DNA from: Eukaryota sp. TZLM1-RC
Taxonomy: Eukaryota > Protista > Metamonada: BaSk clade
Direction: 5' to 3'
Assembly: GCA_040285825.1 (NCBI GenBank)
Contig: JAUPSS010000004.1
Coordinates: 1,778,550 to 1,842,549 of the forward strand
DNA: 64,000 bases
Below, in pieces: positions 4,842 through 39,622 of this stretch. The translations under genes and the position numbers were made by a program. A model generated the notes under the pieces. The model was given only the letters and a program-made list of their open reading frames with translations. It was not told the DNA's origin and ran no database searches. Each line of letters begins with the position of its first letter. The first letter of the stretch is position 1.

Positions 4842-4996
4842 TGATGATCTGTGGGGGTTAGACATTGAGTATACCTTAAAAGTAATTTATTACAAGGGCA
4901 TGAGGATTTCCCTTAACTTAAGCGCATGGGCGCAATAATACAATAACTATTAATAAACTATAAATAAACTATTATAAATATTATCCAAGGCTAACA
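4842..4996 (-). repeat. 3' LTR of A1 (PPT at ~4997-5014)
   Basis: TGTTAGCC...AGATCATCA on the minus strand, preceded by GAAAAGAAGAAATGGCAG. Confidence 0.95.
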
Positions 4997-12056: not shown

Positions 12057-12187
12057 TGAGTATACCTTAAAAGTAATTTATTACAAGGGCATGAGGATTT
12101 CCCTTAACTTAAGCGCATGGGCGCAATAATACAATAACTATTAATAAACTATAAATAAACTATTATAAATATTATCCAAGGCTAACA
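12033..12187 (-). repeat. 5' LTR of A1 (contains the gag ATG at 12056)
   Basis: Identical to 4842-4996. Confidence 0.95.
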
Positions 12188-13254: not shown

Positions 13255-13521
13255 TTTTTTTTTAAAAAAATTTTAATTTTATTCAAAACCTATAAATCAA
13301 CATCTAAAAAATCCATCTCTCCCAAAACAAAAACACTAGATGCAACTCTCTCATAGTAAGATCCAAGAGAAAGCAAAGCATCAGAAACCATCTTCAACTT
13401 CCCCTTAAAAATAGAATACACAATTCTATTTTGCCAAAACAATCTGTTGAAATTTCTGCCAGTTCTTCTCTTTACAATCATTTCAAAATCTTCCAAAAAA
13501 CGTAAAGCAGTTGGTGCAAGT
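13255..13521 (-). mobile_element. 5'-truncated CRE family 1 insertion with poly(A) tail and 9-11 bp TSD (duplicated at 15722-15988)
   Basis: Near-identical to the reverse complement of ~21387-21640; T-run at 13255-13263; TTTAATAAA at 13246-13254 and 13522-13530. Confidence 0.85.
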
Positions 13522-14069
13522 TTTAATAAATTAGTTTTAAATATTGAGATTAGACAAAAGCTCTTTGAGCATGACAAAATCACTTGTGTTGGAGGAGTCA
13601 AAGGGTTACTAGAAGACTCTTTTCGAATACGTCTCCGTATAATAGCAAAAAATGCTTCAACTGGATTGGATTCTGTTGCGTTCGGCCGTAAAATCATATA
13701 TTTGAGACCTGGTTTTTTGTACCACATTCAAAATAAGAAGATTTGTGAATACCACAACCATCCATAATAAGCACTGATCTAGGACCAAAAAACCCGTGGA
13801 TTACACCGGAAGAAATAGGATCCTTCCAGAAACCAATGAATTGGATTCGAGTACAATGTACTTCTTTCAATTGCCCAGCAACGTACATAAATCGGTTGAT
13901 AGCCAGTACTATAGAGACTTGTGGTAAAATTGATTTTATTCCTTTGATTAACGCAATTTTTCCAGTGGGGGACCAAATATATTCAGTGTAAAAGTGCTTT
14001 CTGTTAAAAAAGAGTTCATTAATGAACAGTAACTGAGGATGAACTACAGGTACCAATGTTGAGAAGAAG

Positions 14070-16538
14070 TTCTGAGTCAGAGGTCTGGAGATTAGAGGAC
14101 TAAACAATCGAAACATTTGATCAAAGGTCCAATTAATACAGAGTCTTATGATTATTTTGCCTTACCTCGAAATGTTAAAATAAAGAACGAGATAGGGTGA
14201 AGGAGATAAAGTTGATGTATTTTACCCTATTTCTATTTAAGGCTAAAGGTGCCACTACTGCTTCTCCACTTTTTAAAATTAATTAACATTAAACTGATCA
14301 ACTAGTAACTATATTATAAATATACAAAATACTATAAACTAAATGCAAATGTTTACCATTGGTAAAAATCTTAAAACGAAATAATTTGTACTCGTTACTT
14401 CTTTTTGGTCTATTTTGGGAGGGAGAGGATACCAAGTCCGTTCTCGTAACCTCTATTCTATTATACCAATTATACCATAAATTCCCCAAATTTTACACTT
14501 TTTTGTTTCTGCCTTGATAAACTTTGTGAAATCATACAAAACGCCCATAAGACTTGCTTGATTAGAGGATGTACAATCCCCACGTGCACCATAACAGATT
14601 TTCCCATTTCACCTTCTTGTGTGATGGTCGAAGATGTACAACCTCTACGTGCACCACAACTTGTCGAACCTTGTTCTGTGAAATTTTTTTCATTTGTTCA
14701 AAAAGACAATTGGGTGAAATCAACTGTGCATTTTTCTTATGCTGCATTCAAAGGCACACACAAGTTCTTTTTTGATGATGAAGTTGATAGCTTTGTTCAA
14801 AAAGAAAAATCTTACAGCTTTTTTGAGCAAAACTACTTTAAGCTTCCTATCAAATCTTATGTTAGTGACGCTTGTTTGGAGAATATTGAATTCTAGATGG
14901 GTTTTTTTATCTCAATAAATATTCAAGTTAAAAAAATCAAATCTTATTTTATCACCTCAGCGAAATTATGAAACGTCAAATTGTATGAAATTGATGGGAA
15001 GCCTTTGTTAATGATAAGAAACACAGGAACAGTATCGAAAAACTGTCTTTATTTTACTGACTCTGTCATAGTTGCTTATAAATAAGGTTAGTAGATATCT
15101 CAGAATTTCACGTGATTACGTGGCACTCGTTGTTGAACGGGTCTCTTTACTAATCAACTCGCTCTTTTCTCTATTTACTTCTTTGGTATTTCTGCCTAAC
15201 GGCACCAACTCTGAAATTTAAAGGTGGTTTAAGAAAGGACTCAAAGTTTGTTTTTGAATTTCTGTTGATTTAACCAAAGATGAATACGATCTTCAAATAC
15301 AAAAAAGGAAGCTAGGCATACTTCAATTGATGCATCCTGAATTGATCCTGTCAACTCAAGGATGAATAAAACTCAAGTTGCTTTTTGAGACAAACCAAAT
15401 CAACGATTTTACTATTGTACCACCCAATATTTTGAAAGAAGTACAAGTTGTTAAAAAAATTCGTATCTCCATTTGTGTGATGTTGATGAAAAAGAAGAAC
15501 AAAAACTGCAATATATACAAAAACAACAAAACGAGTACGGAAAAACGCTAGAAATCTTTGTTAGGCCTCTAAGAATACAAAGAGATACCAAAAACGGAAA
15601 TTTTATCATGTCTCTATTACCATCATCTCCTGGACCAACAGCATCAAATGCAGAAGCTGAAGGGCCAATTCAATGTTGCGACCAATCTGGAAAACTCACA
15701 TAATTTTGAATATTTAATAAATTTTTTTTTAAAAAAATTTTAATTTTATTCAAAACCTATAAATCAACATCTAAAAAATCCATCTCTCCCAAAACAAAAA
15801 CACTAGATGCAACTCTCTCATAGTAAGATCCAAGAGAAAGCAAAGCATCAGAAACCATCTTCAACTTCCCCTTAAAAATAGAATACACAATTCTATTTTG
15901 CCAAAACAATCTGTTGAAATTTCTGCCAGTTCTTCTCTTTACAATCATTTCAAAATCTTCCAAAAAACGTAAAGCAGTTGGTGCAAGTTTTAATAAATTA
16001 GTTTTAAATATTGAGATTAGACAAAAGCTCTTTGAGCATGACAAAATCACTTGTGTTGGAGGAGTCAAAGGGTTACTAGAAGACTCTTTTCGAATACGTC
16101 TTCGTATAATAGCAAAAAATGCTTCAACTGGATTGGATTCTGTTGCGTTCGGCCGTAAAATCATATATTTGAGACCTGGTTTTTTGTACCACATTCAAAA
16201 TAAGAAGATTTGTGAATACCACAACCATCCATAATAAGCACTGATCTAGGACCAAAAAACCCGTGGATTACACCGGAAGAAATAGGATCCTTCCAGAAAC
16301 CAATGAATTGGATTCGAGTACAATGTACTTCTTTCAATTGCCCAGCAACGTACATAAATCGGTTGATAGCCAGTACTATAGAGACTTGTGGTAAAATTGA
16401 TTTTATTCCTTTGATTAACGCAATTTTTCCAGTGGGGGACCAAATATATTCAGTGTAAAAGTGCTTTCTGTTAAAAAAGAGTTCATTAATGAACAGTAAC
16501 TGAGGATGAACTACAGGTACCAATGTTGAGAAGAAGTT
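14070..16538. repeat. Tandem segmental duplication copy 2; holds the empty (pre-insertion) site of LTR element A1
   Basis: GCACCACAAC-TTGTCGAACC is uninterrupted at 14651-14670; TT microhomology at the junction. Confidence 0.95.
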
Positions 16539-18299: not shown

Positions 18300-21200
18300 C
18301 AAAAAAATGCGTGGAAAGTCTACAGGTCTTTTTATAGATCATATCAAAGCTGTGGTAATTTCGTTAGAAGATTGTTTAATTTTATTAACAACATTCATTT
18401 TTTAATGAGTTTTACCTAGCCAGCTCAAATATCCTGAAGAATTGAGATGTGTACGTTTTACTGCACTTGTGAAAACTCAAAAATGGATGTTCGTCCAATT
18501 GCAGTTTCTGAAAGTTTGCACAATATTGTTCAGCTTGGTGTTTAAACAGATTCAAAGAAAAAGCAAAAAATAATTGTAACCGTTTCAATACGGAATAAAT
18601 ACCACTGATGGGGTTGTTTTAGCAATGTTTGTTACAGATGTTTCATTTCATCAAGATGATTTTTTTTTCTCCCTCCCTTAGTCAACCCTCTCATATTTCA
18701 CTTTCTGTCACGGCGTTGAAATCGTACTTCTTATTTGCCAATAACGATGCCATTGGCTGATAGTGACTCTGATACTGATTGGAACGCCCAAGCAAAGATT
18801 TTACCAGTCGGAACAAGCTCATCTCCTTCACTCAACCACTCTCCCCACAATACAAGCTATGCTCGAAATTTTTTTCGAAAAAATTTCAATTCAAAAACTG
18901 ATCATTGTACCAGAAAAAACACACAAAAACCACCATTACGTTACTTACGTTCTTTTACGCGCTCTATGAACGACTCCGTTTCTCGAAATTTGTTTTCTCC
19001 TGCTAAAATTGGAAAAAGCCTTAAATCTACCACTGACAACAATTATGGCTTAAATAACAGAATTCATCATGGCTCGCATGTTGTTTTTCGTTCTTCTATT
19101 CAAACAAAAGAGTTAGTTGCTGAATATTCGCAAGAACAAAAAGAAAAAATAGTTGCTTTAAATATTGGATTACAATCAAAAAGTGTGAAAGGTTCTAAAA
19201 AATGTTCGATTTGTGGTATCAGTGGTCATAATTCGAGAACATGCCCTGAAAAACAAAAAAGAGAAATTGAATTAAAATCTGCTCAACAAATTCTCGAATG
19301 TTCTGTTCCAGCTGATGCCGTTGTGAAAGGTGCTGAAAATAATGTTTCTGACGATCAACATTTGAATGTTTCTAGTGCTCACTCTTCTTCCCCTTCTGAA
19401 CACAATAATTTTTGTTGTCCATTTTGCAAAAAAGATGTTACAGATTCAAGAAATGGTCGAAAACTTCTGTTTTGTACCAATTGTAAAGCTGCTGATACCA
19501 TAAGACCCCCGATCCAGATCCCAGTAGAAATTAGCCCCGCCAGTACAATTCCCTTCTCAATGGAAATGAGAAATTTTACTTCTGAATTGAAAAATAATAA
19601 GTGGAATATTTCATCCTTCTGGAAATATTTTGCTCGAAAAAACAAAAATTGTTTTAAAAAAAATTTGGAAATAGAAAAATTCTAAAATCAAAAATTTGCC
19701 GAAAATTGTGCTTACGTAATCGTTATGGTGCCGCAAAGCAGTCCTTGTTTTCTTCTACTTTGGCTGATGCAAACTCTGATACCCTTGAAAAACTTCAAAA
19801 GTTGCATCCTCAAGAAAATTTCAAGTGCAGCAAGCCTGAAGTGTATCCTTTTTGGATTGAAAATCCTATTACTGCAATTGAAGTTTTTAATGCTATTCAA
19901 AAATTACCAAAGGGGAAAGCAGCAGGCCCATCTGGAATTTCTCTTGATCTCTTAAAAATAGCGTGTTCCAGTGCTCCCGAAATTGCTGATGATCTAGCCC
20001 ATTATTATCAACAATTAATTGTTTTGAAAATTAATCCTCCATTTGAATTACTCGCTGCACGTCTGCTTGCTTTAGTAAAGCCTGGAAATGGAATTAAACC
20101 TGATGGAATACGCCCAATTGCTGTTGGTGAATCTCTTTCTCGTTTACTGGCATCAATTGTCTTCGATCGTGTCAAAGACAAAGCTTCTGCATTTTTGAAT
20201 CCTCATCAATTTGGAATCAAAACAATTGATGGTGCTTCTGTTGCTGCTATTGCCTCTGATACCTTTTTTAATGCAGAGGAAAATAATTTTATTTTTAATC
20301 TTGACTTTAAAAATGCTTTTAATTCTGTAAAGCGAGAAGCAATTTTTGAAGTAATTAAATCTGATTTTCCTGAGCTATCAAGTTTTTTCTACAATTTTTA
20401 GGGGGAAAATCAGATTTAATTTATAATTCATTTGGTCTTAAATCATCTTCTGGTCTGAAGCAAGGTGATCCTTTAGGCCCATTATTGTTTTGTTTAGCTA
20501 TTCACAAAACTTTAAATATCATTAAGCAAAAATACCCTTCTATAAAAATAGTTGCTTATATGGATGATATATCCTTGATTGGTTCATTTAATTTACTAGA
20601 ATTGGTTGCTCAAGAAATTGCCGATTCATATGAAAATATTGGCCTTTATCTTAATGCGAGCAAATGTCTTCTGATTGGCTCTTCTGTTCAAGATCTTGTG
20701 ATAAACGATTCTATTGTCCCTTTTACTAATTATAGTAGTGATGCTTTTAAGTTCCTTGGTTGTTGGTGAGGAAACGTGCCTCAAATTCAGAATGAATTGC
20801 AAGTTATTTTGGACAAAATGAAAATTGAACTTGATTCAATTTCTTCTTTAGTAACAACAATTCCCCAAGTTTATGGTAATATCTTAACTGATTCTGCTTG
20901 GACTCTGAATATGAGATTTCGTTCCTTTATCTGGCCTGATAATTTACCTCATAATTTAATTTGTAAATGTTCTCGAGAAATTACAACTACTCATTTGTTA
21001 AATTGTAAACATTTTATTACTTTTAGAAGCAAGGTTCATGATGCTGTAAGAGACCAGTTATATTGTATGTGTAAATCTCATAGAATTGAATCCTTCTTGG
21101 AACCTCTATTGTCAAATCTGTTTGATGCTGAAGATGATTTTCATAAGAATAATAGAGGTGATGTTATATTACCTGGATTAGATGGAAGTTTCATTTTATT

Positions 21201-23750
21201 GGATGTAATGTCTGTTGATCCTTGTAATGCCTCAAATGAAAGGCTAGTTAATTCTGAAATTCATAATCCCCTTTCAAATGCTGAAAATTTCAAATTCAAA
21301 AAATACAATGAACCTTTGTCCAAATTGGCCAGTCTACAGCATGCAAAATACAATTTGTATCCATTTGTATTTTCCCTTTTTGGTTCACTTGCACCAACTG
21401 CTTTACGTTTTTTGGATGATTTTGAAATGATTGTAAAGAGAAGAACTGGCAGAAATTTCAACAGTTTGTTTTGGCAAAACAGAATTGTGTTTTCTATTTT
21501 TAAGGGGATGTTGAAGATGGTTTCTGATGCTTTGCTTTCTCTTGGATCTCACTATGAGAGAGTTGCATCTAGTGTTTTTGTTCTGGGAGAGATGGATTTT
21601 TTAGATGTTGATTTATAGGTTTTGAATAAAATTAAAATTTTGGTGAAAAAAAAAAGATGAATCAAATGTATGTATGTTGTTGGATTTTAGCAATGCATTT
21701 AATTCAAATCATCGGTGCAATATTGATTTTTCTTTGTTGAACTACTTGCCAGAATTGTTGCCTCATTTTCAAACATATTGCACAAATTCTGATTTGTATT
21801 TACTGATTTTATTTTGGAATCATCTAGTTGTAAAGCGAAGAGATCCTTCAGAAAATCTTTTGTTTTTTTTGACCATTCATCCAATTTTATTGCGAATTCA
21901 AGTATTTTTTCCTTCCTTAAAAATAATTGCTTATATCGACGATGTTGTTCTTATAGGTGACTTGATGATTGTCAGAGAAGCAACTTTATGTTTTGAAGAA
22001 TTATTCAACAAAATTGGCCTTCGACTTAACTTACTTAAATGTACCTTACTTTCAAATTCCTCAGCTTTAACGACAGCTGATGGTATTAAAATTCAAACCA
22101 AGTTATATTCAACTGATGCTATTCCTCATTTTGGCCTTATTTTTAGGAAATATTGATGAAATAACCAAAGAAACTAATTGATTCAATTTACGAACTTCAC
22201 AAAGTAAACTCATAACTATTGGAAAGAAATTCATCGAACCAAGGTTTCTTCTACAAAATCTTGAAAAGCCAAAGAATTGTTTGATAAATTGAAATTGATT
22301 TGCGAAAACAATTGACCAAATGATTAAATTGGTTGTACAGAAACATATCATATTTATCAATAACAGACTATGTTTCATTTACAACTTCAATCATATATAT
22401 CGATATGCAGATTCACTTATCGTTAGGTCATTGACTCCAGAAGTTCAAAGAATTATGTGCAAAAGTGTTGTCCCAATTACTAGGATGTAAAATGTCCCAA
22501 ATTCCTGATCATGCTTTTCTTAGTCCACATTGTGGTGGTTTAGGTTGGACAAAAGCCTCAATTCTTACTTCATGTGCTTTTATTGGTGGATGCAGAAACG
22601 CTGTATCTGAGTTTTCTGAAAGTTTTGCTGATTGAAAGGATTTATTAGTGACACCGCAAAGTTCATTTGTTACTACTTTAAATGAGGAAATTTCCAGAAT
22701 TGATGCAGAACAATGGAATCGATGCTTTGACCAACCATTCAATGGCAATATCCCTGGAAAGAATTATTTATATTCAAAATACACTCTTCAAACGTTAAAA
22801 AACGACTGACTAGAATGTATGAATATGATCTTCATAAAATATATGTAGCTCGGTTGTTTTAAATCAAGATCGTCACTCATTGTTATTGGAAAGTGGTGTC
22901 TGTGAGAATAAGTCATCAGATTCTTCACTTTTTGTAACCATTGTACCACGAAGATTTGGATTGTGTGCCACTTATGAAGCATTTGTAACAAAAATGAGAT
23001 TATATTTGAATATTCCCATTAATCAATTATTATAAAAAGAAAAATGTATTTGTTCGAATTCACCACAGCTCACTTTCCCTCATGCTCTGAATTGTTCGAA
23101 ATTGATAACTTATCGTTCTTCATTACATGATGCAGTTAGAGACATTGTTTTTGATAGGGCACAAACTGCAAGAATCTCGTGTATCAAAGAACCTCTGCTG
23201 AAGGAAATATTTTCTCTGAATAATTTTGGTTCTGATGATAGAGGTGATTTATACGGTAATTGGATTAATAACTCTGAAGCTATTGTTGATTTTGTCTCAT
23301 GTATTGTTGCAAATGACATTTTGGTTCACATAAGAATACTTAATCCTGTAGATGCTCTCGAATTTAAAGCTAAAGAAAAACATAGAAAATATGACAAAGA
23401 TATCGAAGAACCTAATGCTGATAGAAATAAACCACTTGTTTTTATTGTTTTCCCGTTGTCTATAAATGGAAGACTTTCAGTAGAAGCAAGACCTTTTTTA
23501 ATCATTTCCAAAAAATGGTTCAAGAAGAACAATGAAAAGATTTGATTTCTCTTTTAGGCGCTCTCGAATTCAAAATGCCATTATTAATAGACTACCTCGG
23601 TTTTTCAATCGAATTAGAGAAACTTGAGCTAGACAGCAAGCAGATCAAGATTTTGTAGAGGAAATCTTGGTTCAATGAATTTCGTCCCATTAGTTATGAG
23701 TTTATTTTGTCAAGTGTGTAAGTTCAAGAAAGATAAAGAACTGACGAAAA
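18300..23750 (+). mobile_element. CRE family 2 element (RT to RLE) split by a nested family 1 insertion
   Basis: Joining 18659 to 21661 restores TDVSFHQDESNVCMLLDFSNAFNS; downstream YIDDVVL, HCGGLG, RSSLHDAVRD, DRGD, KHRKYDK; many stops and frameshifts. Confidence 0.85.
18660..21653 (+). mobile_element. Near full-length CRE-clade non-LTR retrotransposon family 1 (Zn knuckle, Zn finger, RT, RLE), internally deleted pseudogene
   Basis: CSICGISGHNSRTC; CPFC..CTNC; KAAGPSG, RPIAVGE, LDFKNAFNS, QGDPLGP, YMDD, FKFLG; CKC..HLLNC, HDAVRD, RGDV..LLDV..KFKKY; poly(A) at 21646-21655; 7-bp TSD AAGATGA (18653-18659, 21654-21660). Confidence 0.9.
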
Positions 23751-24434: not shown

Positions 24435-24570
24435 TGATGCTTTATCCATATATGATAACAAAGAATAAGGAATAATTTATTAGAATTTCACTGGCCCTTA
24501 TAAAGGCCATCACTAGTGAACTATGTTATATAAATATAAATGTACTAGACTAATTGTCCACAGTACAACA
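24435..24570 (-). repeat. 3' LTR of B
   Basis: TGTTGTACTG...AAAGCATCA on the minus strand; the integrase stop codon abuts it. Confidence 0.93.
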
Positions 24571-25483
24571 CTACCTTTTCCCTCTCTTAGATCTCGAACG
24601 AGAGCTACGAGTACTGACTGCAGGGGAATTAGTCTTAGATTTGGAATTATAAGATACTTTCCGTTTCCTGGTAGTGTGAGGACTAATAGAGCGCAAATAT
24701 GTTTGATATGCCTCAGTGCTTTTGACGTCAGCAACTGGGACAGACGAAGTCTCGCCGCCATACCAAACTGCGGTACAATAAGGAACTTTATTATTGTTCG
24801 AATCTACGTAATCAAAGTGATCTATAATTTTAACGATTACAGATTCTTCCATATCGCCAGCAGCAATATTCTTATGCCAATCAAGATCTTCTTTAGGGAA
24901 GTCTGAAAGGTATAGTTTACAATGATTTATACTTGCCGTAGACATCGAACCAGTGACAAGATTCTTGAGTAATAAACTTTTATTGGATTTAACTTCTTCA
25001 ACGAGAAAAGGGCCAGCGAAGCAACCATGGAGTTTACCATTAGTCTTTAATCGCAAAACTAAGTCACCTTTATTAAAAGGGTTCCTATGTTTGTTAACTT
25101 CAGGCAGTTGTTGAGCTTGCCTGAGCTCTGCCTCTTCTCTCTTCTTTGAAATCCTTTCAAGTTTTGCTTCAAGATCTTTAACAAAGGGAATATTAACATT
25201 AGCTGATTTTATTAATTCAAACATATTACTAGGATCAGCTCTAGGGCTGTGGTCGCTACCAAACATTAAATTGTAGGGCGAATGACCAGTAATTCTACTA
25301 ATAGTTGAATTGATTTGAAGTTGTACAATTGGGATATATTCACTCCAATTGCTATAATCGCCAGAGTCCACCAAAATCTTTCTTAGACTTTGTAAAATGT
25401 CTCTGTGTCGTCTTTCTACTAAACCATTGCTTTGTGAAAAGCTAGTTAGTGAGCGACTTACATCAATGTTTAATAAATCGCAT

Positions 25484-28400
25484 TGTTAGCCTTGGATAAT
25501 ATTTATAATAGTTTACTTATAGTTTATTAATAGCTATTGTATTATTGCGCCCATGCGCTTAAGTTAAGGGAAATCCTCATTCCCTTGTAATAAATTACAT
25601 TTAAGGTATACTCAATGTCTAACCCCCACAGATCATCAATACGTATTGGATCACCTTTGGGTGGTTCCAATGACAACTCCGAGACTGTTAGGACTGATCC
25701 TCCTACGTCTCACTCTTCGAGTTCTTCCTCCCGAACTCCTCAGTCGGGACCAGAACAACCCTTGTCAACTGGGCCCGAGGGAAGCAATGCTTCTCCTCCT
25801 CCTGTGTTAACTCCTCCCTCCGGAGATCCTGTTACACAACCCAATGTTACAAGTTCTTCCTCCCAAACTCCTCAGTTGGGAACAGAACAACCCTCTGGCG
25901 GCGAGAGAAGTGATACTTCCTCTCAACCCTCGGGTCAAGGTTCCACTCCATCTACGGATGACGTTCCTGTGGTTCCTATCAGTCTTCCTGTTCCTCCCTC
26001 TAATGTGGAAAACTTTGTACCTCTTTCTCCTCCCCCTGGTTCTGAAGGAGAGGTTGAAGATTCCCTTTTAGGTCCTGAACAGTTCAGTACTTTAGATGAA
26101 TATCTGAAGTATGTCATCAACCAGACTGACCCCTGACTCGGCTAGCAACAAGATATCTGAGCTGTTGAAGCTCAAGAGGGTAGAGCCTCCCTCTTCACCT
26201 ATTGTTTGCGCTCCTGTTGCCCCTTCCACTTCTTCTACGGAAGCTCCTGGGGAAGGACAACAAGTTCTTTCTACTTCTTCTACGGAAGCTCCTGGGGAAG
26301 GACAACAAGCTCCTTCCATTCCTTCTAGAGAAGTACCTATGGAAAGCAGCCCTCCACAACAACCAGCTCCTCCTGCAGTCCCTGCTGGTAGCCCAAATCC
26401 TACTACTCCTTCTCAAGAAGTTCCTGTAGCAGGCCTTCCTGATACTTCTGCTCCTACTACGGTAGCTCCTACAGAAGTCCATTCAACTCCATCTGTTCCT
26501 CCTTCGGGAGTTTCTACTAGAGGAGTAATTCATGTCCCTGCAACCTCTGGCCAGACTCCTCAGCAAGGTCACGTTGTTTCTTCTATTCCTGCTGCTTGGC
26601 AGGTGCTTAGTGCTGCACAGCCTAACACTTATCAAGCCCCAAGCCAGCCCCAGGAATCAGATTCTCCTTTCATCTCTACCCAACAGAGAACTGAAGCTCA
26701 AAACTTAGTTCTCAATGCTGGTATTGAGTTAATGCTAGGAGATCCTGCATCGATTCCTCCCAATGAACTCATTGCTGCTTTACCCCCATTTTGGGGTCCA
26801 GAAGTGGTTAATGATCACGGCTTTAGGATCCGCAGAAGAATAGGTCCCTACTTCCCAACGGAAGAAGTAGACAATCTTACGGTTCGTTGTGACCCTCCTC
26901 CAATTTATCCTCAACGGGATACTGTTGGAGGGTTCAGAACTCCTCGTGAAGGTGTACAGAGGATCTTCGCTGGTGATGAGCTGAATCTCTTCCTCAACCG
27001 ATGTAACCCATGTCCTTTCCCCAGGTTTAGCCCTGGATACAATGCCTCTCTTGATATTTATATCAATAGAGACTTCAGGACTGGATGGTGGTACACTTAC
27101 ACTACGAACTACCAAAGATTGTACCTTCAAGACCGCAGACCAGACCATTGCGCGTCATATTTTGGTCCAGAACATAGAAGGAATAGGCCACTAAGGGACG
27201 CCCTGATGAATGTACAGGAGAACATTGGTGTCACCAATTCTAGTTCTCTTCTGTGGGTCAATGTTGATGGTAATGTGCAAAGTTACTATCCGAGCGATCA
27301 TGACCCAGTAGAATTGAGAACTTCTGAGCCTGACCCAGTTGAGACAGACACAGTTTTCTCATCTTTGAGCATTGAGCCTCAAGATGACCAACAACAAGAT
27401 GAGCCAATGGCGACTACTGACACTGTTGAGTCAGTGCAACAATCTGTAGTTGTCCAATCTCAGGATCCATCAACTCCTTCCCAGGTTCCTCAGGACCCTA
27501 GGCTCCTAGGAGTAACTCCTTCTAACACTCCCATAGCTCCCCAGTATTCCAACACCCTACTGATGGAAGCTATGGCGAGTTCACAAGATAGAGATAGAGA
27601 TAGACAAAGAGGTGGTCGTCCTAGAAAACCCACCCTGGAAGCCAACGATATCTCTGACCCAGTAAGGATCTTGAAATTCATCGACAGATTTATTCTGTAT
27701 GCTAGGACTGAGAGGACCATTGAAGAGAGAGACATCAATGAATCTGATCCTACTCAAGTCAGACTAGCAAGAGAAGTGTCTGAATTAAGAAGGCAACTTG
27801 AGGAACGTTCTCGTCCTCCTGCCACTCCTCAATCCATAAGCAGAGAAAACCGGAACCTCCCTCTCGATCAGAGATATGGTAACCCCCTCCACGAGTGGGA
27901 CCGATTCAGAGCTGCTGCTCAAGTCGACCCTCGCAGGATCGCCTCCTGTGTTACTCCAGAATGCTTGGCCGCTCTGAGAGCTCAAGGCAGGTTTTCGTCC
28001 ATGTCTGATAGTATCTCAGCTATCGACAACATCAATGAGGAGCAAATATGGGAATCAATTTTACACCTCAGCCAGTATAGTACTTTAGAAACGGCGAGGA
28101 ATCAGTTATATAGAGTTCAGATGAATTGGAATATTCAGGACTTTAGGAATCGCTGGGGCGACTTCACTGTGAGGCTAATGAGAACAGTTTCACGAAGTAC
28201 TGCCATTTCTGACGTCAGGGCAAGCGACCGTGCCTTGTATGGTCAACACTTTCTACAGCGTATTCAAAACTGGGAAATTGCAACCCATATGATCGATTCT
28301 GTTGGTATTCAGGCCATCAGTGACAACCTGAGAACAGTATGGTCCACACCCAATGTTTGGCAACACCATACTTTACAACAATTTGTCGACATCCTTGCTG

Positions 28401-31400
28401 CTGAATACATGAGTTGGTGTTCAGCAAGATCCTATGACGAGCAAAGGGCCAACATCAGTGACAGCTATCAACAACATATGGGTCACTACGTTAGAGCAAA
28501 CCCAAAGGACAAGAAAAGAATAGGCAAATTTAAGCCTGCGGGTTCCAGCGTCGCCCCTGCTCAACTTACCAAAAGGAGCAAGTCGCAAATTAAGAAAGAA
28601 AGAGATAAAGCTGGTCTCTGTAGATTCTGTGGTCTTCCAGGCCACTCCATTAACGAATGTCCCGACCCTGATTGCCAGCGATCCAAGCAATGGCGAGAAG
28701 CCAACCCAGATGCCGTTCGAGCATATTTGGCTAGGGGTAGTAGTAATAGTAGTAGTAGAGGCAGAGGTAGACGTAGAGGAAGAGGCAAGGGCCCTTCTAG
28801 TAGTAATAAACGTTCCCATAAATATTCTATGTTTACTATAGAGCAAGATAGCTCTCCAACAGGTAATACATCAAAGCAACGTTCAAACAAATGTTCCTTG
28901 TTTACTATAGAGCAAGACAGCTCTCCAGCACGTAAAACACCAAACATAAAACAAACCTCAGTCTCCAACCAGTGGATTAAGTGCTTAACTAATCCTTTGA
29001 CTACCCAGAATTTTAAAACAGCTACAACGATAGAAACACCAAATAAACCCTGTTTCATTCATGAGTTCGACTCGAACCCAGACTCAGAGTCCCACAGTGA
29101 TATCTTCATGGTTCGCACCTCAGATGTCGCACGCAAAAATTTAAAATTGAAATTTTCAATAAATAACTGCGAAATAGAAGGGATCATCGACTCTGGAGCT
29201 TCGATATCAGTCATCACTGTTGATCTAGCAGAGAGATGCAACATGGTAAAGACTAACCATTGCATAAACTTTAAGTCTGCAAACAACATCATGTCGAAGT
29301 CTTTAGGATCAGCAGAAGGCACACTGAGCTTCAGACTCGGTAGTGTAACCCAATTAGTTCATGTGAAACATAGCTTGGCCATCATTCCTGGCAACAATAT
29401 GTTACTAATTGGTAGAGACCTGCTGCATCACCTAGGCTTATTGAACGATGAAGGCCTCTTCATCAAGATGGATGAGGAACATCGTACATTACTTCTGCCT
29501 GAGGCTGAATTCGACCATCGAATCTCCCAAGTCTCAGATGTCGTCAACGTCCCCAGACGTTGGTTGGAGCACATACAGTCTTCTGGTTGTACTATTAACC
29601 TCGACTGTGACAACGACAAGAAGACCTTACTTCTAACCTTGAAAGAGTTCGAAGAGACATTCACCCTTAAGCCGCATGCTGATGGGATTGACTGTCCTCC
29701 AATGGAGATCAACTTTCACGATGAAAGTATTCGAGTCAGACGACCCCCTCGTAGGTTAAACCCCGAGAAACAGAAAGTCGCCGAACAGATCTTCGATGAA
29801 CTCGTCGAGTCTGGATTTGCTGTACCATCGAACCATGAGTTCAGCTCTCCAGTATGTCTTGTGGTATACCCTGATCATCGTAAGCCTCGTCTTACTGGTG
29901 ATTACAGCGGCAAGGACGGAGTCAACGCCAACACTATTCCCGTTGAACCTAATCTCCCCAGAATATCCGATGTGCTAGTCTTCCTTTCAGAAGCCAATTT
30001 CATCGGTACCCTTGACCTCCCCAAAGCCTTTTGGCAACTAAAAATTGCAGAAAAGGACTGGGAGAAGACTGCCTTAAGCATCCCTGGCAAAAGCATCATG
30101 TTTAAACGTGCTGCTTTCGGCCTCAAGAACGTTCCTGCAGTTTTCCAGAACGTTATGGCAGACATCTTCTCCGGAGACGGTGTATTCATCTATATAGATG
30201 ACATCATTATAGTAGGTAGAACTTTCAACGAGTTCCTCGGACGTCTAAGACGTGTCCTCGAGAAGGCTCGAACCCGTAGAGTTAGCCTTGGACTGCCCAA
30301 GTGCCATTTTGTGTCCTCTAGACACCCAATAAAGATCCTTGGTAGCAGATTCCAACACAAAACCAGGACCATTGATCCTACTCGCACAGAGTCTTTACTG
30401 AATCTTCCCAGACCTAAGACTGTGAAAGACGCCCGTAGCCTTATCGGCTCAGTCAACTTCATTAGGGAATGGCTTCCCCAGGTAACCAAGCATGTTGCCC
30501 CGATCATCAAACTAACACACGGCAAACCACGTCGCCTGCAGTGGAAAGACACTCACGACCACCATTTAGCCGAAATCAAACGCCTGATCGCGGAGCATAT
30601 GCCTCTAAACTTACCTCCGGTGGATAACCAAGTACTAATTAGTTGCGATGCCTCTGATATAGCAGTTGGCGGCGTGATTTGGGAACAATTAGAACCCACT
30701 AAGGACCCTGGTACTTCCTTACTCAATAGGAAATGTAGACCAATCAGCTTCTTCAGCAGATTGTTGACTAACTCCCAGCAGAACTGGCCCACGGTACAGA
30801 AAGAGCTTTATGCTATCCTTCTCATGCTTACCGAAAGTGGCTTCGAGAACTACCTCAAAGGAAGGCGTCTGATCATTTTTCACAGATCACCAAAACCTTA
30901 CTTACATGCTTACCGCTCCGAACAAAAACAGAATAGTCTGAAGGTGGCTTCCCATCTTTTCTGAGTTCCTATTCGACATAGTTCATACAAAAGGGGAAGA
31001 GAACCATTGGGCAGACATGCTATCTAGGATAGTACCGCCCCAAGACAATCATACCATCAACCATCTGGTACATTCTAATGACCAAGAGTTTCACCCTATC
31101 TACTACACAAATAGGATTGACGAAACTGAGTCAGAGAGATGCTTCGTTGAAGATCTCCATACATTTGAGAAGGTGCTCATCCTTCAAGACAAATGCTCCA
31201 ATGACCTTCCACTCTTCGAGCCATGGCTCTGCAAGATCAGGTCCGAACAAAAGCGAGCCCTCGCTAACCAGGACACCTCGTTTAACAACTGTACTTTGGA
31301 TAGTCGTCTAGATCTTTATCTGACTCCAGAGCACAAGATCGTGATTCCTCAATCACTGGTTAAGGATACGCTTTACCTTCTACATGGACTCCCGCAAGGT

Positions 31401-32856
31401 GGCCACCCCAGTAAGGCAGAAAGTCTCCTCAGACTCAAGAACAGCGACTACTGGTGGCCTAACATGCTTTCAGACATGACCAAGCACGTCCAAGAATGCC
31501 CCTCCTGTCAGAAGACAGCAGCAGTCCCCAAACTGCATGTCCCTACAACTGGTTCCTTGTGGGCTGACAGACCATTCGCAAGAGTTAACGTCGACGTCAT
31601 TGGTCCTCTTCCAGAAGATCAAGACGGCCACAGATACATTCTTGTATTTGTGGATAGCTTCACGAGGTTCACTATCATAGTCCCTCTCAAAGAACTCAAC
31701 GCCAACCTTACTGCTGACGCTCTCATATGGAAGGTATGCGCGATATTCGGGATCCCGTTCATAGTTCATAGTGACAACGGTCTTGAGTTCTCTAAAGCTG
31801 TCATCGACGCTCTATGTGAGTTTTTGGGCATAGAGGTCTCAAAGTCCGTCCCTCACTTCTCTCAGTCCAACGGTTTAGTCGAACGCCGTCACCGTGACAT
31901 TTTGCAGAATTTGAGGAAGCTGCTCGTAGATTTTAACGCCTACGACGCATGGTCAGAGTACATACCCTATGTACAATTGTTAATCAACTCATCCAAGAGT
32001 TCGATTACAGGTTACTCTCCATACGAGCTCATGTTTGGTTCAGATTTTAGCCCAAGAGCTGACCCCGGCAAAATCATAGAGACCCTCGAAAGCTCAACGT
32101 CTGAGTCAACCTACATCAACAACATTCAATCCAAATTTGCCAGATTGAAGAAGAAACAGGAGGAAGCAGAGCTCCGTCAAGCTTCCAAGGCTCCTCCTCG
32201 TGATTCCCAAATCGAAGCCAACCCTTTCTCTCCTGGCCAATTGGTCAAACGAGCTTCGTCTTCCACTGCTAAGCTACATGGTAACTACAAAGGACCATTC
32301 TTAGTTATTGACACACCCTCTACCTCCACAGTTGATATCAAGAATCTGTGCACTGGTATGGTTGTTAAAGCCAGTGTGAAGCATCTCCAACCTTGGCATT
32401 CCAGTTTACCAGCTGATGATGAATTTCACTCCTGGGTTGCTGCTGGTGATGCAGAAGAGCACGTGATCCAGAAAGTCCTCAGTCAGGATGGTGATTACTG
32501 TCAAGTCCAATGGCCTGGCAATCATATTACCACTGAGCTGGTTTCGACTGTTCAAAACACCTCTGCCTATAAAGAATTCTCCAAGTCTGTTTCTAATACT
32601 CGCTCTCGTCCTTCACGCCGTAAACGTCGTTCTGATAATATTAACAATAATGTTAATCCAACTCCTATCAGGCCTCGACGCTCGAAAAGAAGAAAGGGCA
32701 GTGTTAGCCTTGGATAATATTTATAATAGTTTACTTATAGTTTATTAATAGCTATTGTATTATTGCGCCCATGCGCTTAAGTTAAGGGAAATCCTCATTC
32801 CCTTGTAATAAATTACATTTAAGGTATACTCAATGTCTAACCCCCACAGATCATCA
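25484..32856 (+). mobile_element. Ty3/gypsy family A, copy A2, nested antisense in B
   Basis: Identical 155-bp LTRs 25484-25638 and 32702-32856; TSD GCAT (25480-25483, 32857-32860); PPT 32684-32701. Confidence 0.97.
25615..32717 (+). pseudogene. Gag-Pol of A2 (consensus single ORF of ~2366 aa)
   Basis: Continuous gag-pol frame 26111-~30880; +1 at ~26130-26134 and 30876-30880, and an AGA>TGA nonsense at 30939, relative to A1. Confidence 0.93.
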
Positions 32857-35624
32857 GCATAACCCTTTGAATATGGCATTTGCAAATTCAATACCATTGT
32901 CACTATGAATCAACAGTGGGATACCAAAAATTGATACTACACTCCATAGGAGGTGATTGGTTGCCTCCACTGCGTTCAATTCCTTTACGGGGCAAATGAT
33001 CGTATACCTAGTGAACGAATCTACAAAAACTATTAAATATTTGAATCCATTATCATCTTGTTGTAATGGTCCAATAGTGTCTGCGTTTAATCGTGCAAAA
33101 GGTCGATCAGCCCAAAGAGAGCCAGATGATTCAATGACATTTTTAGGCACATGCGCCGTCTTTTGACATGCTGGGCATCTCTTAATATGGTTAATCATGT
33201 CTTTGCGCATGTCGGGCCAAAAGTAATCACTATTGAGTAATTTCTTTACGCTAGTCGTCACACTAGGATGGCCAACATTTGCATGTCCATGAATGATAGT
33301 TAAAGTCTGCTTCTTTAAACTATCTGGGATGACAATCTTCCCACGATTGTTGGTATACAATTGAATATCTGAATTATAATTGTAATCTTTATAATAATCA
33401 GGATTTGAATCAACATCTATAAGTTGTTCTTGCATAATCTTTGAGATCCAAGTGTCAAATAAATCAAATTTAGTATCCTCAACTGGTTCTTTCAGTGCAG
33501 ATAAGCTATTGATCGTGGGTAGCTCAATTGTGGACGGTTGAGTAATATCATCCCTTAACAAATTAACTCTAGTTAATAAATTTAAATAGGTTAATTGTTC
33601 TTCAACTCTGTGAGGTGCCAAGTTTCTCACTTGTTGGAGTCGAGGAGTTTTGGGTTTGGTGTCAACCAATCTAGACAACATGTCTGCCCAATAATTCTCC
33701 TCGCCTGCAGTGTGGACTACATCAAAATTGAATTCTGACAATATTGGTAGCCACCTCTTCACAATTCTGTTCTTTTCAGGAGCTGATATGAGGTATGCTA
33801 AATTTCTATGATCAGTGAAAATAGTTAATTTCCTCGAAATTAAATAGTTTTCTAAACTACTGTCAGTGAGAATTAGTAAAATTGCATACAACTCTTTCTG
33901 AAGTACAGACCAATTCTTTTGTGAAGTTGATAATAATCTGCTAGAGAAGGCAATAGGTACAACCTTTCTCTTAATTAGCGGTGTCGTAGGATCTTTAGGT
34001 GGGTTAACTTCTTGCCATATTACTCCACCTACAGCCACATCGGACGCGTCAGCACTTATTAAAATATGCTTGTCTTCTGAGGGCAATTCAAAAGAGATAT
34101 TTGCTTTGATAAGATTTATAATCTTACCAAAAGCCTCGTCATGATCAGGAATCCACTTGATTTTTGACGGTTTGTTTCTGGTTAATTTGTTGATTGGTTC
34201 TATCAAGTCAGACAAATTTGGCAACCAGTCACGTATATAATTGATCGATCCTATAAAACTCCTAACTTCAGGTAATGTCCTGGGTTTGGGTAGGTTGATC
34301 AGTCCCTCAATCCTAGATTCATCTATATAACGGGTTTTGTTTACAAAAATACTACCTAGAATTTTTATTTCATGTTTGCAAGTGGTAAAGCTACACTTGG
34401 GTAGGCCAAGGTTAACTCTAAAACGTTTGGCGCGTTCTAGGACCGTACCTACTCTAGATAGAAATTCATCCAGGGTCGAAGCTACTATTATTATATCATC
34501 GATATAAATAAATACGCCCTCAGAATCAAATATTTCCATCATCATGTTTTGCAAGACTGCAGGAACGTTTTTCAAACCAAAACAAGCCCTTTTAAAACTG
34601 ATCGACATCCCGGGAATTGATACGGTAGTTTTATCAATATCCTCTTCTGCAATTTTGAGCTGCCAAAATGCCTTAGGTAAATCTAGAGTTGCTATATAAT
34701 TAGCTTTACTTAGAAACTCTAAAATGTCGCTAATCCTGGGCAAATTTGCCTCTACAGGTTTAGTTAAATCATTTACTCCACCAATACCACTAAAATCGCC
34801 AGTTAATCGTGGTTTCCTGTGATCAGGGTAAATCACAAGACAGATGGGACTACTGAATTGAGACTTTGCGGGCACAGCAAATCCATTACGGATCAATTCG
34901 TTAAAAATTTCCTCGGCTACCCGTTGTTTTTCTGGGTTTAATCTTCGAGGTTTCCTTTTGACGACCTTACTTTCGTCATAAAATGGAATGGTCATCGGCT
35001 GACAATCAATTCCATCCGGGTGAGGTAGCCCACTAAATACATTTCTATATTTTTCGAGTAGCACGACTAGGCGTTCCTCGTCCCTAATGTCATCCAGGCA
35101 TATTCTACAGCCCAACTCATCTAACTCATGTCTAAATGTGGAATGCCCAAAATCATTACCTAAGTCTGATTTATTACTCAATGGTTCTATGAATCTAATT
35201 GGTTGACAAATTCTATTATCGAACTCACATTCAGCATTTAAGATGGTGCGATGTTCGCGATCCAAATTAATATTAAAACCGTGCTCCGTGCGTAGCCCCA
35301 AGGTTTGTAATAAGTCTCTTCCGATCAAAAAATTATTGGTACCAGGAATGATCTGGAATTCGATCCTTAAAAACACTTGAGTGGCCAAGCTACCCACATT
35401 TAGAGCAAGAACACCACTTGCACATCCCAGGGTTGTGGAGCGAATACCATTTGCCGATAAGTATTCGACAGTCTTATTGTCATTAACTGTCATATTACAT
35501 TTAGAGGCTAAATCCATTGATAATGCTGAAAATGCAGCTCCATTATCAATTTCGCCTTGTACTTCCACGTTATTTATGGTGCAGGTTAACCAAAGTTCCC
35601 CGTTAGAACTTTCTTGATCCTCTG

Positions 35625-38597
35625 CTACCCTGGATAGTTTAACACTGTGGATAGAACCCACAGGATTGGATGACTCCTAAATCTTTTTAATGGATTTAGG
35701 TGATTATAATTCGAATCTGTTTTGCTCATTTTATAAATGGATTTGATTGAATTATTTGTAAGGTTATTGTTAAAAGATGTATAATCATCTGATTTATTAC
35801 TACTACTTTTACGTTTTCTATCACGTCTTTCACCTCCTTGACGCTTTTTTGAACCAGGTCTTCCCTTTAATTTAAAACATTTCTCTTCAGGATGTTTATT
35901 GGTTTTACATAAGTTACACCATTGCTCTGAAGGGATGGGTCGACTGTTTACTCTAGGGTTCTTAAAAGGACCTTTTGACTGGCTTCGTCCTTTTTGCGCA
36001 GGAGCGTGAGCACCAAAAGCTGTTCTTATCAAATTCATGTCTTTGATCGAGGATTCAAGGCTATTGACCTTGTTAACAAATGCGTTACCTAAATCGTAAA
36101 TCGCATCGCCCAGTTTCTCGTTACTTGAATCAAACTTGCCAATCCAAATGATATATGTGTCCATCAATTGATTGTTTGTTTTGTCGTTAATAGTTTCGAG
36201 AAATCTCTTTGCTGGGTAGACGACAGACGGATTACCATCCGTTCCAGGCATAATTGTAGAGCGTCGAATTATATATATGATCTGCTCTATGAAGGCTGTC
36301 CATGAAGATTCAGCAGTTATTCTGCGACTGATCTCAGGTGGTCTTACAGACCTTAAAGCCTTCTCAACATCGGTAGGGTATTTGTACTGGGTGCTGAGTA
36401 GCAAATATTCCCAGATTTCGGCGTCAGATGGGTTGTTGCCTAACACGTTTGTTCGGCCTCCATAAAAACTCTGCCATTCTGCGATCACCTTACCCTCGAT
36501 CATAAATCGCAGATACAAAGGGTCCACTTCGAAGAACATAGATCTAACGAAGTCGTACTGATGAGCAGGTTGACCGTATTTGGTGATCGGCGTAAATGCT
36601 CTGGTGGGTCCATCGCGATCCCTAACTGTTTTAGCCCAATTGCCAAAGTTAAGAACGAAGTCGAAGATCTTCTTGGCGTCAAACGCTTCATTTAACTTAA
36701 CTAGGCATCTCAGTTTGTCGTCTATTCTTTTCCTCAATTTCTCCTCGTCTGTTACAGGAGTTCTATAAAGACCGAGGGTGTCGACGAGAGAATCTCTAGG
36801 AGCATTCGTTCCTAGGGGTTGCGTGGGTATAGATGATTTTATAACAAATGCTTGTGTAGGAGTTGCTTCACAAGAAGCTCTCCTAGATGCCAGAGGCCCT
36901 ACAGAAGGTGTACTATATAGGTTCATATTCCTCTCTTCTGAAGGCAATGTTTCGCCCAACTTAATGATAAATCTTGTCTTAGGAGGTTCCTCCTGCACAG
37001 GTACGGTCTGGGCTGGTGGCCTTAAATCCACCCAATCTGGTGCATCTTTAGATCCTCTAGGGACCCCTGCTAGTTTATGATCATATGGAAGGCAACTGCT
37101 CTTTATTAAGACATTCTCAAAAACATTTTGGTCGGGCCAGCTATCAACCCACGCCTTAAGTTTAGCCATCCATGCATCAGGGTATACTAGTTTTAACTTG
37201 TTGGGGCCAACACGTTGGTCTTTCAATTCAATTACCCTTGTGCCTATTTCTCTAATATAGGACTCTTTGGTATGAAATTGAAGGGTGTCACCTCGAGATT
37301 CATCGAATCTGCCCCCAAGCATGATAAAAATGTCCGCAATGGAATCTTTTGGGTGTACATTCTCCACTAGGAAATGCCTTACGACGCCTCTAAGGTTTCT
37401 ACCTTGTTGATTATGAGGGTACATCTTAGCTATCCAAAATAGTCTGTCGTAAGCTTCTTGATTTCCACTGAAATATATTTTGTGGTCATCAATTGCATCC
37501 CTATGCCATTTGGCAGGCCTGGGAGTAGCAGCTTGATACTTTGAACGAGGTGCGTTAAAATAGCAATCCTCGACTGCACTCATTCCACACGAGACTGCCG
37601 AATCGGTAAGATCATCCAATCTCTTCAAAAGATTTGGACTCTGATCATAACTCTCGTAGACGACGTCGTCAAGTGTTTTGCCGTGGGCTTCCCCAAAGAG
37701 GAAGGGCCAACGTTTCGCTAAATGGTCACGTCGGACCTTCTCACATTCGGCTGGGTCTACGTCTCCCGCAAGACGCTCTGACTCATTCTCAGCCATTTTT
37801 AATAATTCGTCATCACTTTAATCCATTACATCTTCGGGAGGATTGGCGATGAGGTCCAATAAGAAATCTCTAGTTACAGCCTCAACTGCCTTTGCTAATT
37901 TCCTTCGGTAAAGACCCTGAGAAGTCCTTTCCGTAGATGGGAAACTAGGAGTTGGATTAGGAGGATTGGGTGTATGAGGTGGTTCATCATCGCTCTCATC
38001 CCCTCTCCTGCTGTAGTTCTGATTAAGAGATCCTCTGGAATCACTTTGAGGTTCCTCACTTGAGCTGATGTCAGAAGTAGGTGAGGAGGTAGTTTTACGT
38101 GAGGAGCTAGTCGTAGACTGTTGCTCGCCTTCGCCTCCTTCACCTTCTGTACAAGCGTCAGGTTTATTACTTACAACAAACGCTTTGAATCTCCGTTGCT
38201 CGCTCGGAGTGAGAAAACTCTTCCTACAAGGAAGGAGCTCCGAGGAGTTATTGGGATATGTGTACAGTTCTGTCACATCCACAACGTGGTTACCTCTCTC
38301 CTTATTAGGGAGGTGACTTCCTTTCTGGGAGGAAGGGCTCTCCTCAGTGTGAAGTTCACTCTCCTTATTAAGGAGGTGGCTTTCTTTCTGAGAGGCAAGG
38401 CTCTTCTCAGCAAAAAGCTCACTCTCCTTAGGAGGATTACTCTTCCCGAAGGAAGGATTACTCTCCGTAGGTGGAGGATTACTCACCGTGGGTGGTGGAT
38501 TGTTCTCCTTCAAAGAAGGGACATTACTCTTCCTCAGAGAGGAAGGAGGGTTATCATTGTGGCTTTTCAGGCCATTAATTAATGATGCTTTATCCAT
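35625..38597 (-). pseudogene. Gag of B (~990 codons) with one in-frame TAA at 37818-37820
   Basis: ORFs 37818-38609 and 35625-37796 are in the same frame, separated by TAA plus 7 codons; capsid region similar to A Gag (YGQPAHQYD..VDP..EIWE..TQY); CNLCKTNKHPEEKC knuckle. Confidence 0.85.
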
Positions 38598-38712
38598 ATA
38601 TGATAACAAAGAATAAGGAATAATTTATTAGAATTTCACCGGCCCTTATAAAGGCCATCACTAGTGAACTATGTTATATAAATGTACTAGACTAATTGTC
38701 CACAGTACAACA
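38583..38712 (-). repeat. 5' LTR of B (contains the gag ATG at 38597)
   Basis: Matches 24435-24570. Confidence 0.93.
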
Positions 38713-39622
38713 GTACTCACTTTTGTGCGTTTGGATAACTGTGTGTCAGCTTCCACACGATTCAGCTTTCTGTATATCATTTGTTTCATGTTCAGACAGT
38801 GATCGCCTTCTTGATTGAAGCAACAATGTGAAAAAGATTCAGTGTGTTGAGTGTTTAGTTTAGTTTAGTAGAGAGAAAGCTTTATCGCATTCATATTCAG
38901 ACAGTCACTTTGCGGACTCAGTGCCTGTGCTTATGGAGAAGGTACAATATTATATTGTATATATAATGGATATAACTATCATTGAAGATTAATTTACTGC
39001 CTAAAACTAGAAAATCGACAGTCCCTTTATTATTGGAGACAATATAAAAATTGCCATATTGAGTCTCCCCATGTTCACTATAATTAATGTTAGGAGCTTT
39101 GTTGTGCCCCTGATTGGTTCTTTAGGTAACGCTGCTGTACTGCTACGTAATATTATTTTAGCCATCAGTTCTGAAATGGACTATTGACAAGTCCGTTTAA
39201 GCACACTACAAACTACAACATTTTGAAACTAAACGGACAAACCACGGTCTGGACTAATTGATCAACGAATGAGAAACCAACGAACTAATGTCTGGTCCCT
39301 TGTTCGATTCAACGCATTACCGACATGTACATAATTAGAAAAGTATTCTAACTACCCCTTTGGAATATGTTTCTTGACCCAAATTTGTAGCAAGTGAATG
39401 AAGAGATATCAAGGATGAAGCCGGATTAAAATTCCCACTTAACTACATTCTCTGCACAATCAACACAATGAAAGTTGCTGATTGTGTTCTAAAAACACCA
39501 CACTATTGCTGGATAACAAACAAGAACATAAGAATAGATTATTGCAATGGTTGAATGGTATAGGAATGGGATGATTTTCTTCAATAATTTTTTGAAGGCG
39601 TAAAATTTTGATTCATCAAGAG

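Follow-up and report, generated by a model that had tools for sequence, protein, structure and literature searches.

The choice of the primer is a defining step in the life cycle of retroelements with long terminal repeats (LTRs), and to our knowledge only two solutions have been established for it, i. e. a host transfer RNA (tRNA) or, as in the Tf1 group, the element's own 5' end. Short palindromes are known from the leaders of human immunodeficiency virus 1 (HIV-1, the dimer initiation site DIS), HIV-2 and mouse mammary tumour virus (MMTV), and there they mediate the pairing of two genomic RNAs. Tf1 obtains its self-primer from an RNA duplex that is cut by RNase H (summarised in PMC7175516). 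The GalEa copia elements of fungi are without a primer-binding site and carry a conserved sequence of 9 bp that becomes palindromic once the terminal A of the LTR is counted in; this palindrome occurs in the variants CTGATCAGT and CTAATTAGT, which differ at paired positions (Donnart et al. 2017, PMC5445492). The authors could reconcile the GalEa site with none of the priming models and raised the retroviral leader palindromes as a comparison (PMC5445492). SM-Tcn1 (PMC2864245) and the miniature retrotransposons with terminal repeats (TRIMs) of bivalves (PMC6934838) have also been reported to lack a recognisable primer site, and neither has such a palindrome at the LTR boundary. In this study, we have analysed a stretch of 64,000 nt (the window) from the protist Eukaryota sp. 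TZLM1-RC (contig JAUPSS010000004.1, positions 1,778,550 to 1,842,549) that harbours three complete LTR elements, A1, A2 and B, as found by self-comparison and alignment. Judging from the sequences of these elements and their relatives, a 12-nt palindrome takes the place of the tRNA primer site in one clade of compact Ty3/gypsy elements. Our work confirms this observation, which proved to be real, to differ from chance and to extend over the clade. Among the readings of the palindrome, the one with the best support is a tRNA-independent site whose action depends on two RNAs pairing with each other, and priming from the partner RNA seems plausible.

A palindrome where the 5' LTR ends

The ends of the LTRs in the window were set independently, by alignment of each LTR pair and by target site duplications (TSDs) of 4 bp. 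The 5' LTR of A2 covers positions 25484-25638 of the forward strand (155 nt, TGTTAG...ATCATCA), its identical 3' LTR positions 32702-32856, and the element is framed by the TSD GCAT (25480-25483 and 32857-32860). A1 and B are located on the reverse strand: A1 has its 5' LTR at 12033-12187, its 3' LTR at 4842-4996 and the TSD GTTG, and B has its 5' LTR at 38583-38712 (130 nt, TGTTGTAC...GCATCA), the TSD GTAC and a 3' LTR at 24435-24570 with an insertion of 6 nt relative to the 5' copy. Exactly at the 5' LTR end, all three elements carry a perfect 12-nt palindrome, CAATACGTATTG in A2 (25637-25648, forward strand) and A1 (12023-12034, reverse strand) and CATTAATTAATG in B (38573-38584, reverse strand). 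The terminal CA of the LTR forms positions 1 and 2 of the palindrome, and the first ten internal nucleotides form positions 3 to 12; behind the 3' LTR of A2, where the TSD follows, there is no palindrome. A preliminary description of this DNA had claimed a common register of the palindromes as well as two compensatory changes between A and B. Both claims hold, and the changes concern the pairs 3/10 and 6/7.

For a fixed 12-mer, the probability of being perfectly palindromic by chance is about 3e-4, as calculated from the base counts of the window. Palindromes of 12 nt of the form CA..TG were observed three times in the window as compared to 1.0 expected from dinucleotide shuffles, and all three of them are located exactly on 5' LTR ends. 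Further palindromes of the window, at positions 14015, 16482, 18026 and 20011, do not lie at an LTR end. The last of these is found inside a short open reading frame (ORF) at 19706-20398 with a partial match to RVT_1 and no nearby LTRs, which we read as a degraded retroelement fragment, and its palindrome is probably due to chance.

The preliminary description had also proposed a survey of related elements. A search with the Pol protein yielded matches of 100% identity to hypothetical proteins in Eukaryota sp. TZLM1-RC and further matches in GEM-RC1 and TZLM3-RCL, all other matches having at most 33% identity, and the members of the clusters of these proteins come from NCBI genome assemblies only, with no transcript contigs among them. 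From the three genomes, 11 loci (L001 to L010 and L013) were taken by Pol similarity alone, i. e. without regard to the palindrome. Their LTR pairs were identified by self-BLAST, and the ends were set by the 4-bp TSDs. Together with the window elements, this resulted in 14 elements of nine families with a recognisable 5' LTR end. All 14 have a 12-mer in the same register, which is perfect in 13 elements and decayed in one; thus, the palindrome is present in every family with a scorable 5' LTR end. For 12 of the 14 elements, this end is set by both the LTR pair and the TSD; of the 11 elements from outside the window, 9 retain both LTRs. Most LTR pairs are 100% identical, indicating that the insertions are recent; the same conclusion can be drawn for A1 and A2, with 155 of 155 identical positions in the LTR pair of each element. 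For L005, only the 5' LTR is present, and its end was recognised solely through its identity to L004; L006 has no recognisable LTR pair and was excluded from scoring. Three further candidates with unconfirmed LTR ends were not counted: L009:4801 (CAATAATTATTG, which is part of the 12-mer alignment though), L008:18924 (CAAAAATTTTTG) and L007:19162.

The palindromes of the fetched elements differ considerably in sequence. In TZLM3-RCL, we found CAGTACGTACTG (L001), CAGTAATTACTG (L007) and CAATACGTATTG (L010). In GEM-RC1, L009 carries CAATTATAATTG, and the two members of another family, L002 and L008, carry TAATAATTATTA. In TZLM1-RC, CAGTAATTACTG is present in L004 and L005 and CAATACGTATTG in L013. 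The only imperfect copy is that of L003 (CAATAAATATTG, with a central A.A), the LTRs of which are 95% identical. Since L013, a member of the same family with LTRs of 98.7% identity, has a perfect palindrome, the mismatch in the older copy L003 looks like decay after insertion. Over all families, the LTRs are 91-155 nt long. An ATAAA-type motif is located 40-60 nt upstream of the LTR end in all fetched families and could serve as a poly(A) signal, as a TATA-like box or in both roles; the repeat region (R) and the unique 5' region (U5) of these LTRs must be very short.

That selection maintains this site as a covarying palindrome, and in a constant register to the LTR end, is supported by three lines of evidence. 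First, 97.9% of the cells of the 12-mer alignment contain standard pairs, and there is no G.U pair among the 48 cells. Four of the six pairs (1/12, 3/10, 5/8 and 6/7) have changed on both sides, and one-sided changes were not found in any pair. The covariation score was reached by none of 500 shuffles, and control structures slid by 1-3 columns gave zero double changes. Second, even the last two bases of the LTR take part in this covariation. In the GEM-RC1 family of L002 and L008 (LTRs at L002:9895-9985 and L008:9895-9985, with at least 23 members of the protein cluster), the LTR starts with TG and ends with TA rather than CA, and positions 11 and 12 of the palindrome are TA rather than TG. 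This is seen in two insertions with the TSDs TAGA and AATG and with LTRs of 100% identity. Finally, in a tree of the reverse transcriptase (RT)-RNase H region the three families of TZLM3-RCL fall into a single clade (support 100/99), in which three different palindromes occur, and an identical palindrome reappears in separate clades. Thus, the double changes are repeated events and not a single inherited state. A chance origin of the palindrome was rejected based on both the shuffle expectation and the covariation score.

It had further been suggested that the pairing extends over a 2-nt AT bulge. In A2, the candidate flanking helix has its 5' arm GATC at 25631-25634, followed by the AT bulge (25635-25636), and its 3' arm GATC at 25649-25652 (forward strand). 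The extension is indeed present in A and, merely as GC..GC, in B, but it is statistically weak as judged by shuffling of the flanks (Fisher p = 0.018, with families that are not independent of each other). Elsewhere, extensions were found as GGC/GCC in L001 and L010 and as GTCA/TGAC in L009. Moreover, a matched change with the AT bulge kept separates A (GATC/GATC) from its sister family L013 (GACC/GGTC). We consider it probable from these comparisons that the flanking helix across the bulge is real.

Known primer sites and the type of pairing

The preliminary description had implied that the site corresponds neither to a primer site for a tRNA 3' end nor to the LTR complement of the Tf1 type, and our analysis agrees with it. 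As reported there, TGG is missing within 0-3 nt of the LTR end. A TGG is located at positions 11-13 in seven of the nine families, and neither of the GEM families has one near the LTR; even A and its sister family L013 are unlike in the sequence that follows TGG. No tRNA genes were detected in the window by ARAGORN, and no known RNA families by Rfam. The comparison with the host tRNAs that had been suggested was made for Glu, Pro and His, the three species found in the fetched loci, and the matches did not exceed 7 nt. A primer site for a tRNA 3' end was rejected because no TGG adjoins the LTR, because the two recently active GEM families do not contain it at all, and because the matches to the three tRNA species are so short. 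For comparison, the control L011 (Logan contig SRR18067283, 33% Pol identity), which is the nearest relative found outside the three genomes, has a classical site of the tRNA type: an LTR-like ...ACA is followed by one base and TGGCGCCC (L011:1-60).

The earlier statement that no LTR sequence is convincingly complementary to the site was reproduced as well. In all nine families, the longest complement in the LTR to the nucleotides +1 to +14 comprises 4-7 nt, which is not beyond chance (shuffle P 0.23-1.0), and a self-priming site of the Tf1 type was rejected for this reason. The palindrome is not a coding feature either. The ATG of gag is located inside the 5' LTR (25615-25617 in A2, 12056-12054 in A1, 38597-38595 in B), the gag ORF of A1 is open from this ATG over 969 amino acids, and the palindrome falls in gag codons 8-12 in A and 5-9 in B. 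However, the reading frame across the palindrome is the same in six families but different in L009, and in L002 the site is located upstream of the annotated ATG. Because the frame varies and the site can precede the annotated start, the palindrome cannot reflect a property of the protein.

Which type of pairing is selected can be deduced from the centre of the palindrome. The central positions 6/7 (CG or AT) and 5/8 (A-T or T-A) have kept their complementarity in every intact copy. With position 6 directly beside 7, and 5 and 8 only two bases apart, they cannot pair within the same strand, yet they covary, and a simple monomer hairpin is thus excluded as the selected structure. This leaves the pairing between two molecules, or the copying of one half of the palindrome from the other. 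The predicted energies point in the same direction: homodimers of the 12-mer reach -7 to -18 kcal/mol, and -13 to -28 kcal/mol with flanks of 8 nt, as compared to -1 to -12 kcal/mol for two monomers. The monomer folds of the region (z -0.7 and -1.1) are no better than those of shuffled sequence, and the monomer hairpins are predicted to be weak and to form with a 4-nt loop only. Being a perfect palindrome with predicted homodimers that are more stable than the monomers, the site shares a feature with retroviral dimer sites, i. e. a self-complementary sequence that is predicted to be able to pair two RNAs. Of the two modes of pairing that had been considered initially, the pairing of two RNAs through the palindrome is thus suggested as the best fit by the covariation of the central pairs and the homodimer energies, and a single RNA that folds back on itself is the less favoured of the two.

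Possible priming from the partner RNA and its alternatives

By the logic of reverse transcription, the 3' end of the primer lies where U5 meets the primer site. In the elements described here, a self-complementary element is locked to the U5 junction in every family and covaries with the last two bases of the LTR, and this makes a role in priming likelier than a free-standing dimer signal. It is tempting to speculate how the palindrome might serve both purposes. Where U5 passes into the leader, two genomic RNAs would pair by means of the palindrome, resulting in a duplex of 12 bp that would often be prolonged by a helix of 2-4 bp over a bulge of 1-3 nt. One of the RNAs would then be cut within the duplex, most simply after position 10 of the palindrome, possibly by the RNase H of the element itself in analogy to Tf1. 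The new 3' OH, paired to position 3 of the partner and thus to the first base past the LTR, would prime the minus-strand strong-stop DNA exactly at the LTR end, and its extension would run through CA into U5 and R. The uncut partner would provide an intact site for the second strand transfer. A symmetric cut of both RNAs would result in minus-strand templates lacking positions 3-10, with only 2 bp left for the second jump. For this reason, the model requires a donor besides a template that stays intact, or else a separate donor RNA that is short. If the plus strand copies the leftover RNA primer back to position 1, positions 11 and 12 would be templated anew from positions 2 and 1 in each cycle. 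Such a re-templating would explain why the symmetry is strictly Watson-Crick, and likewise the lack of G.U pairs, the family with TA at both ends, and the instant compensation of changes.

Our best reading of the sequences at hand is a site of RNA dimerisation from which the minus-strand primer is supplied in trans as well, and we assign it a probability of roughly 0.45. The claim that trans self-priming with two packaged genomic RNAs, one of which is nicked in the duplex and extended at its 3' end on the other, constitutes a third mode of priming is put forward slightly more tentatively still. Several considerations weigh against this interpretation. With three tRNA species compared, it is by reasoning rather than by a complete comparison that an internal tRNA fragment is excluded as the primer. 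In B and in the GEM family, the palindromes are rich in AU and yield just -7 to -10 kcal/mol. The lack of G.U pairs would fit templated copying or a constraint at the DNA level equally well. The asymmetric or partial cut is an extra assumption that the model needs. Finally, the genomic end of the LTR is set by integrase processing, and the true primer junction could be a few bases further in.

Among the alternatives, the one that survives best is that the palindrome might be a dimer-linkage or packaging signal only, with priming achieved by something else, for instance a host RNA with a short or internal match lying further downstream. The covariation supports an intermolecular pairing directly, the position of the site near the gag start codon in most families would be convenient for switching between translation and packaging, and retroviral leaders hold palindromes that start dimerization, some of them in or beside the primer-binding site. 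However, a mere dimer signal gives no reason for the exact LTR register in every family or for the covariation with the last two bases of the LTR. Moreover, the LTR complement and tRNA comparisons revealed no separate primer-binding site beside the LTR and no other conserved candidate next to it, and retroviral dimer sites accompany a primer-binding site but do not replace one. We regard a pure dimer signal as rather unlikely.

Less probable by a good deal is a hairpin of a single molecule, built from the flanking helix, the bulge, four outer pairs and a 4-nt loop, that would be recognised by the reverse transcriptase or another factor, a recognition of the kind proposed for GalEa's Conserved Hairpin Site. 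Such a structure would agree with the outer pairs and with the flanking helix, and so would the compensatory change of GATC/GATC to GACC/GGTC between the sister families, and GalEa provides a precedent. However, positions 5/8 and 6/7 would be bases of the loop, and yet they have kept their complementarity and covary; in addition, the monomer folds are weak and at the level of shuffled sequence while the dimers are far more stable, and the second downstream copy seen in GalEa (CHSeq2) is absent here. A constraint at the level of the DNA is very improbable. A dimeric protein, either the integrase or a host factor, might bind the palindromic double-stranded DNA, or the palindrome might form the end of a single-stranded intermediate of the complementary DNA (cDNA), and the strictly Watson-Crick nature of all pairs would fit such a scenario. 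However, the 8-mer core varies widely (ATACGTAT, TTAATTAA, GTACGTAC and ATTATAAT) while its symmetry is kept, and this argues against a sequence-specific recognition of the DNA by a protein; moreover, the site is internal in the finished cDNA and away from the ends that are handled by the integrase. Finally, that a host tRNA, a tRNA fragment or another host RNA primes at or just after a palindrome that is incidental has the lowest probability of all: the TGG at positions 11-13 in most families and the restriction of the comparison to three tRNA species leave some room for it, but the two recently active GEM families do without TGG, the sequence behind it is not even shared between sister families, the variable positions change in symmetric pairs as no match to a host RNA would demand, and a site at a distance of 10 nt from the LTR would add ten extra bases to the cDNA end.

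If priming in trans from the dimer site is true, genome dimerisation and priming are joined in one element of 12 nt. The small size of the elements is striking, their LTRs having 91-155 nt and gag starting inside the LTR, and several of them are apparently recently active; they are thus suited to work in vitro.

Surroundings of the elements and relation to known systems

A2 (25484-32856) is nested in B, with the insertion spanning 25480-32860, and splits the integrase region of B: the ORF at 32854-35661 resumes in 24571-25374. A1 sits in a tandem repeat with a unit of 2,469 bp, in which 12186-14071 and 14655-16538 are 99.5% identical and 4248-4842 matches 14067-14661. The segments 1694-3713 and 21673-23731 form an inverted pair of 2-kb repeats with 85% identity. 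Two long ORFs are present on the forward strand at 39608-47936, the first with DEAD/Helicase_C domains and an internal tandem duplication of 966 bp (39791-41676), the second with WWE domains; they look like a host gene rather than a transposon. Among the fetched loci, L001:22880-23262 (TZLM3-RCL) and L008:17066-17311 (GEM-RC1) contain clusters of another repeated palindrome, CAACACGTGTTG and TAACACGTGTTA, respectively, in tracts rich in ACACGTGT. These clusters may represent a further mobile element, either as its ends or as an array.

By their overall organisation, the elements studied here belong to Ty3/gypsy (Metaviridae). In A2 and B, the Pfam domains are arranged in the order protease, reverse transcriptase, RNase H and integrase, and the same holds for the fetched relatives. 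The LTRs are direct repeats flanked by TSDs; those of the window (155 nt in A, 130 nt in B) start with TGTT and end with CA, and ends of the TG..CA type are found throughout with the exception of the one family ending with TA. A polypurine tract precedes each 3' LTR in the window; the stretch directly 5' of the 3' LTR of A2 lies at 32683-32701 of the forward strand, as placed by the LTR alignment. The elements thus share the TG start, the polypurine tract, the short TSD and the order of the domains with canonical Ty3/gypsy elements and differ from them in having a palindrome instead of a tRNA complement. As in the Tf1/sushi elements, which belong to Ty3/gypsy as well and are found in Schizosaccharomyces pombe and relatives, the site abuts the 5' LTR; a tRNA-independent priming by the element's own RNA is established there and is proposed here. 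However, the Tf1 type of LTR complement, which comprises about 11 nt of the transcript's 5' end, is lacking beyond the level of chance in the nine families, and the site is complementary to itself, which implies pairing in trans. With the retroviral dimer sites, the palindrome has in common that it is short, that it is located in the 5' leader, and that the pairing of two RNAs is predicted for it. The retroviral sites are located in hairpin loops, coexist with a tRNA primer-binding site and are not fixed to the LTR end to the base, and in all three respects they differ from the site described here.

A clade that makes use of neither of the two established solutions, with at least nine families from three species of a protist lineage that branches deeply, would show that the choice of the primer is more plastic than previously thought. 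Pipelines for LTR annotation that require a site of the tRNA type will miss or misfile such elements. The preliminary description had called the suggested mode of priming distinct from both known ones. This holds as far as neither a tRNA-type nor a Tf1-type site was detected, but it overstated the novelty of the site, since the palindrome of GalEa was published in 2017 (PMC5445492). Indeed, GalEa is the system that resembles our elements most in the site itself: A tRNA-type site is lacking, and a palindrome that starts within the last base or bases of the LTR replaces the primer-binding site. According to our own comparison of the published A|CTGATCAGT with CA|N8|TG, the centre of the palindrome is located between the fourth and the fifth base past the LTR end in both systems. 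The differences are equally clear. GalEa belongs to the copia superfamily, is found in fungi and has TSDs of 5 bp and a palindrome of 10 nt, whereas the protist elements have the domain order of Ty3/gypsy, TSDs of 4 bp and a palindrome of 12 nt; with a gypsy-type order of domains, they are not members of the GalEa clade of Ty1/copia. Moreover, 12-41 bp downstream GalEa has a further conserved sequence that is complementary to the first, and the hairpin of the two contains a fixed A/A mismatch. In our elements, such a sequence is absent; the longest match in the nine families comprises 3-5 nt and is at the level of chance. What is new here is a Ty3/gypsy variant from protists of a kind of site that has already been published for the fungal GalEa elements. 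If priming from the partner RNA is true, it provides a concrete account of the unexplained fungal site, and the geometry shared by the two systems would mean that this mode is either ancient or has arisen twice.

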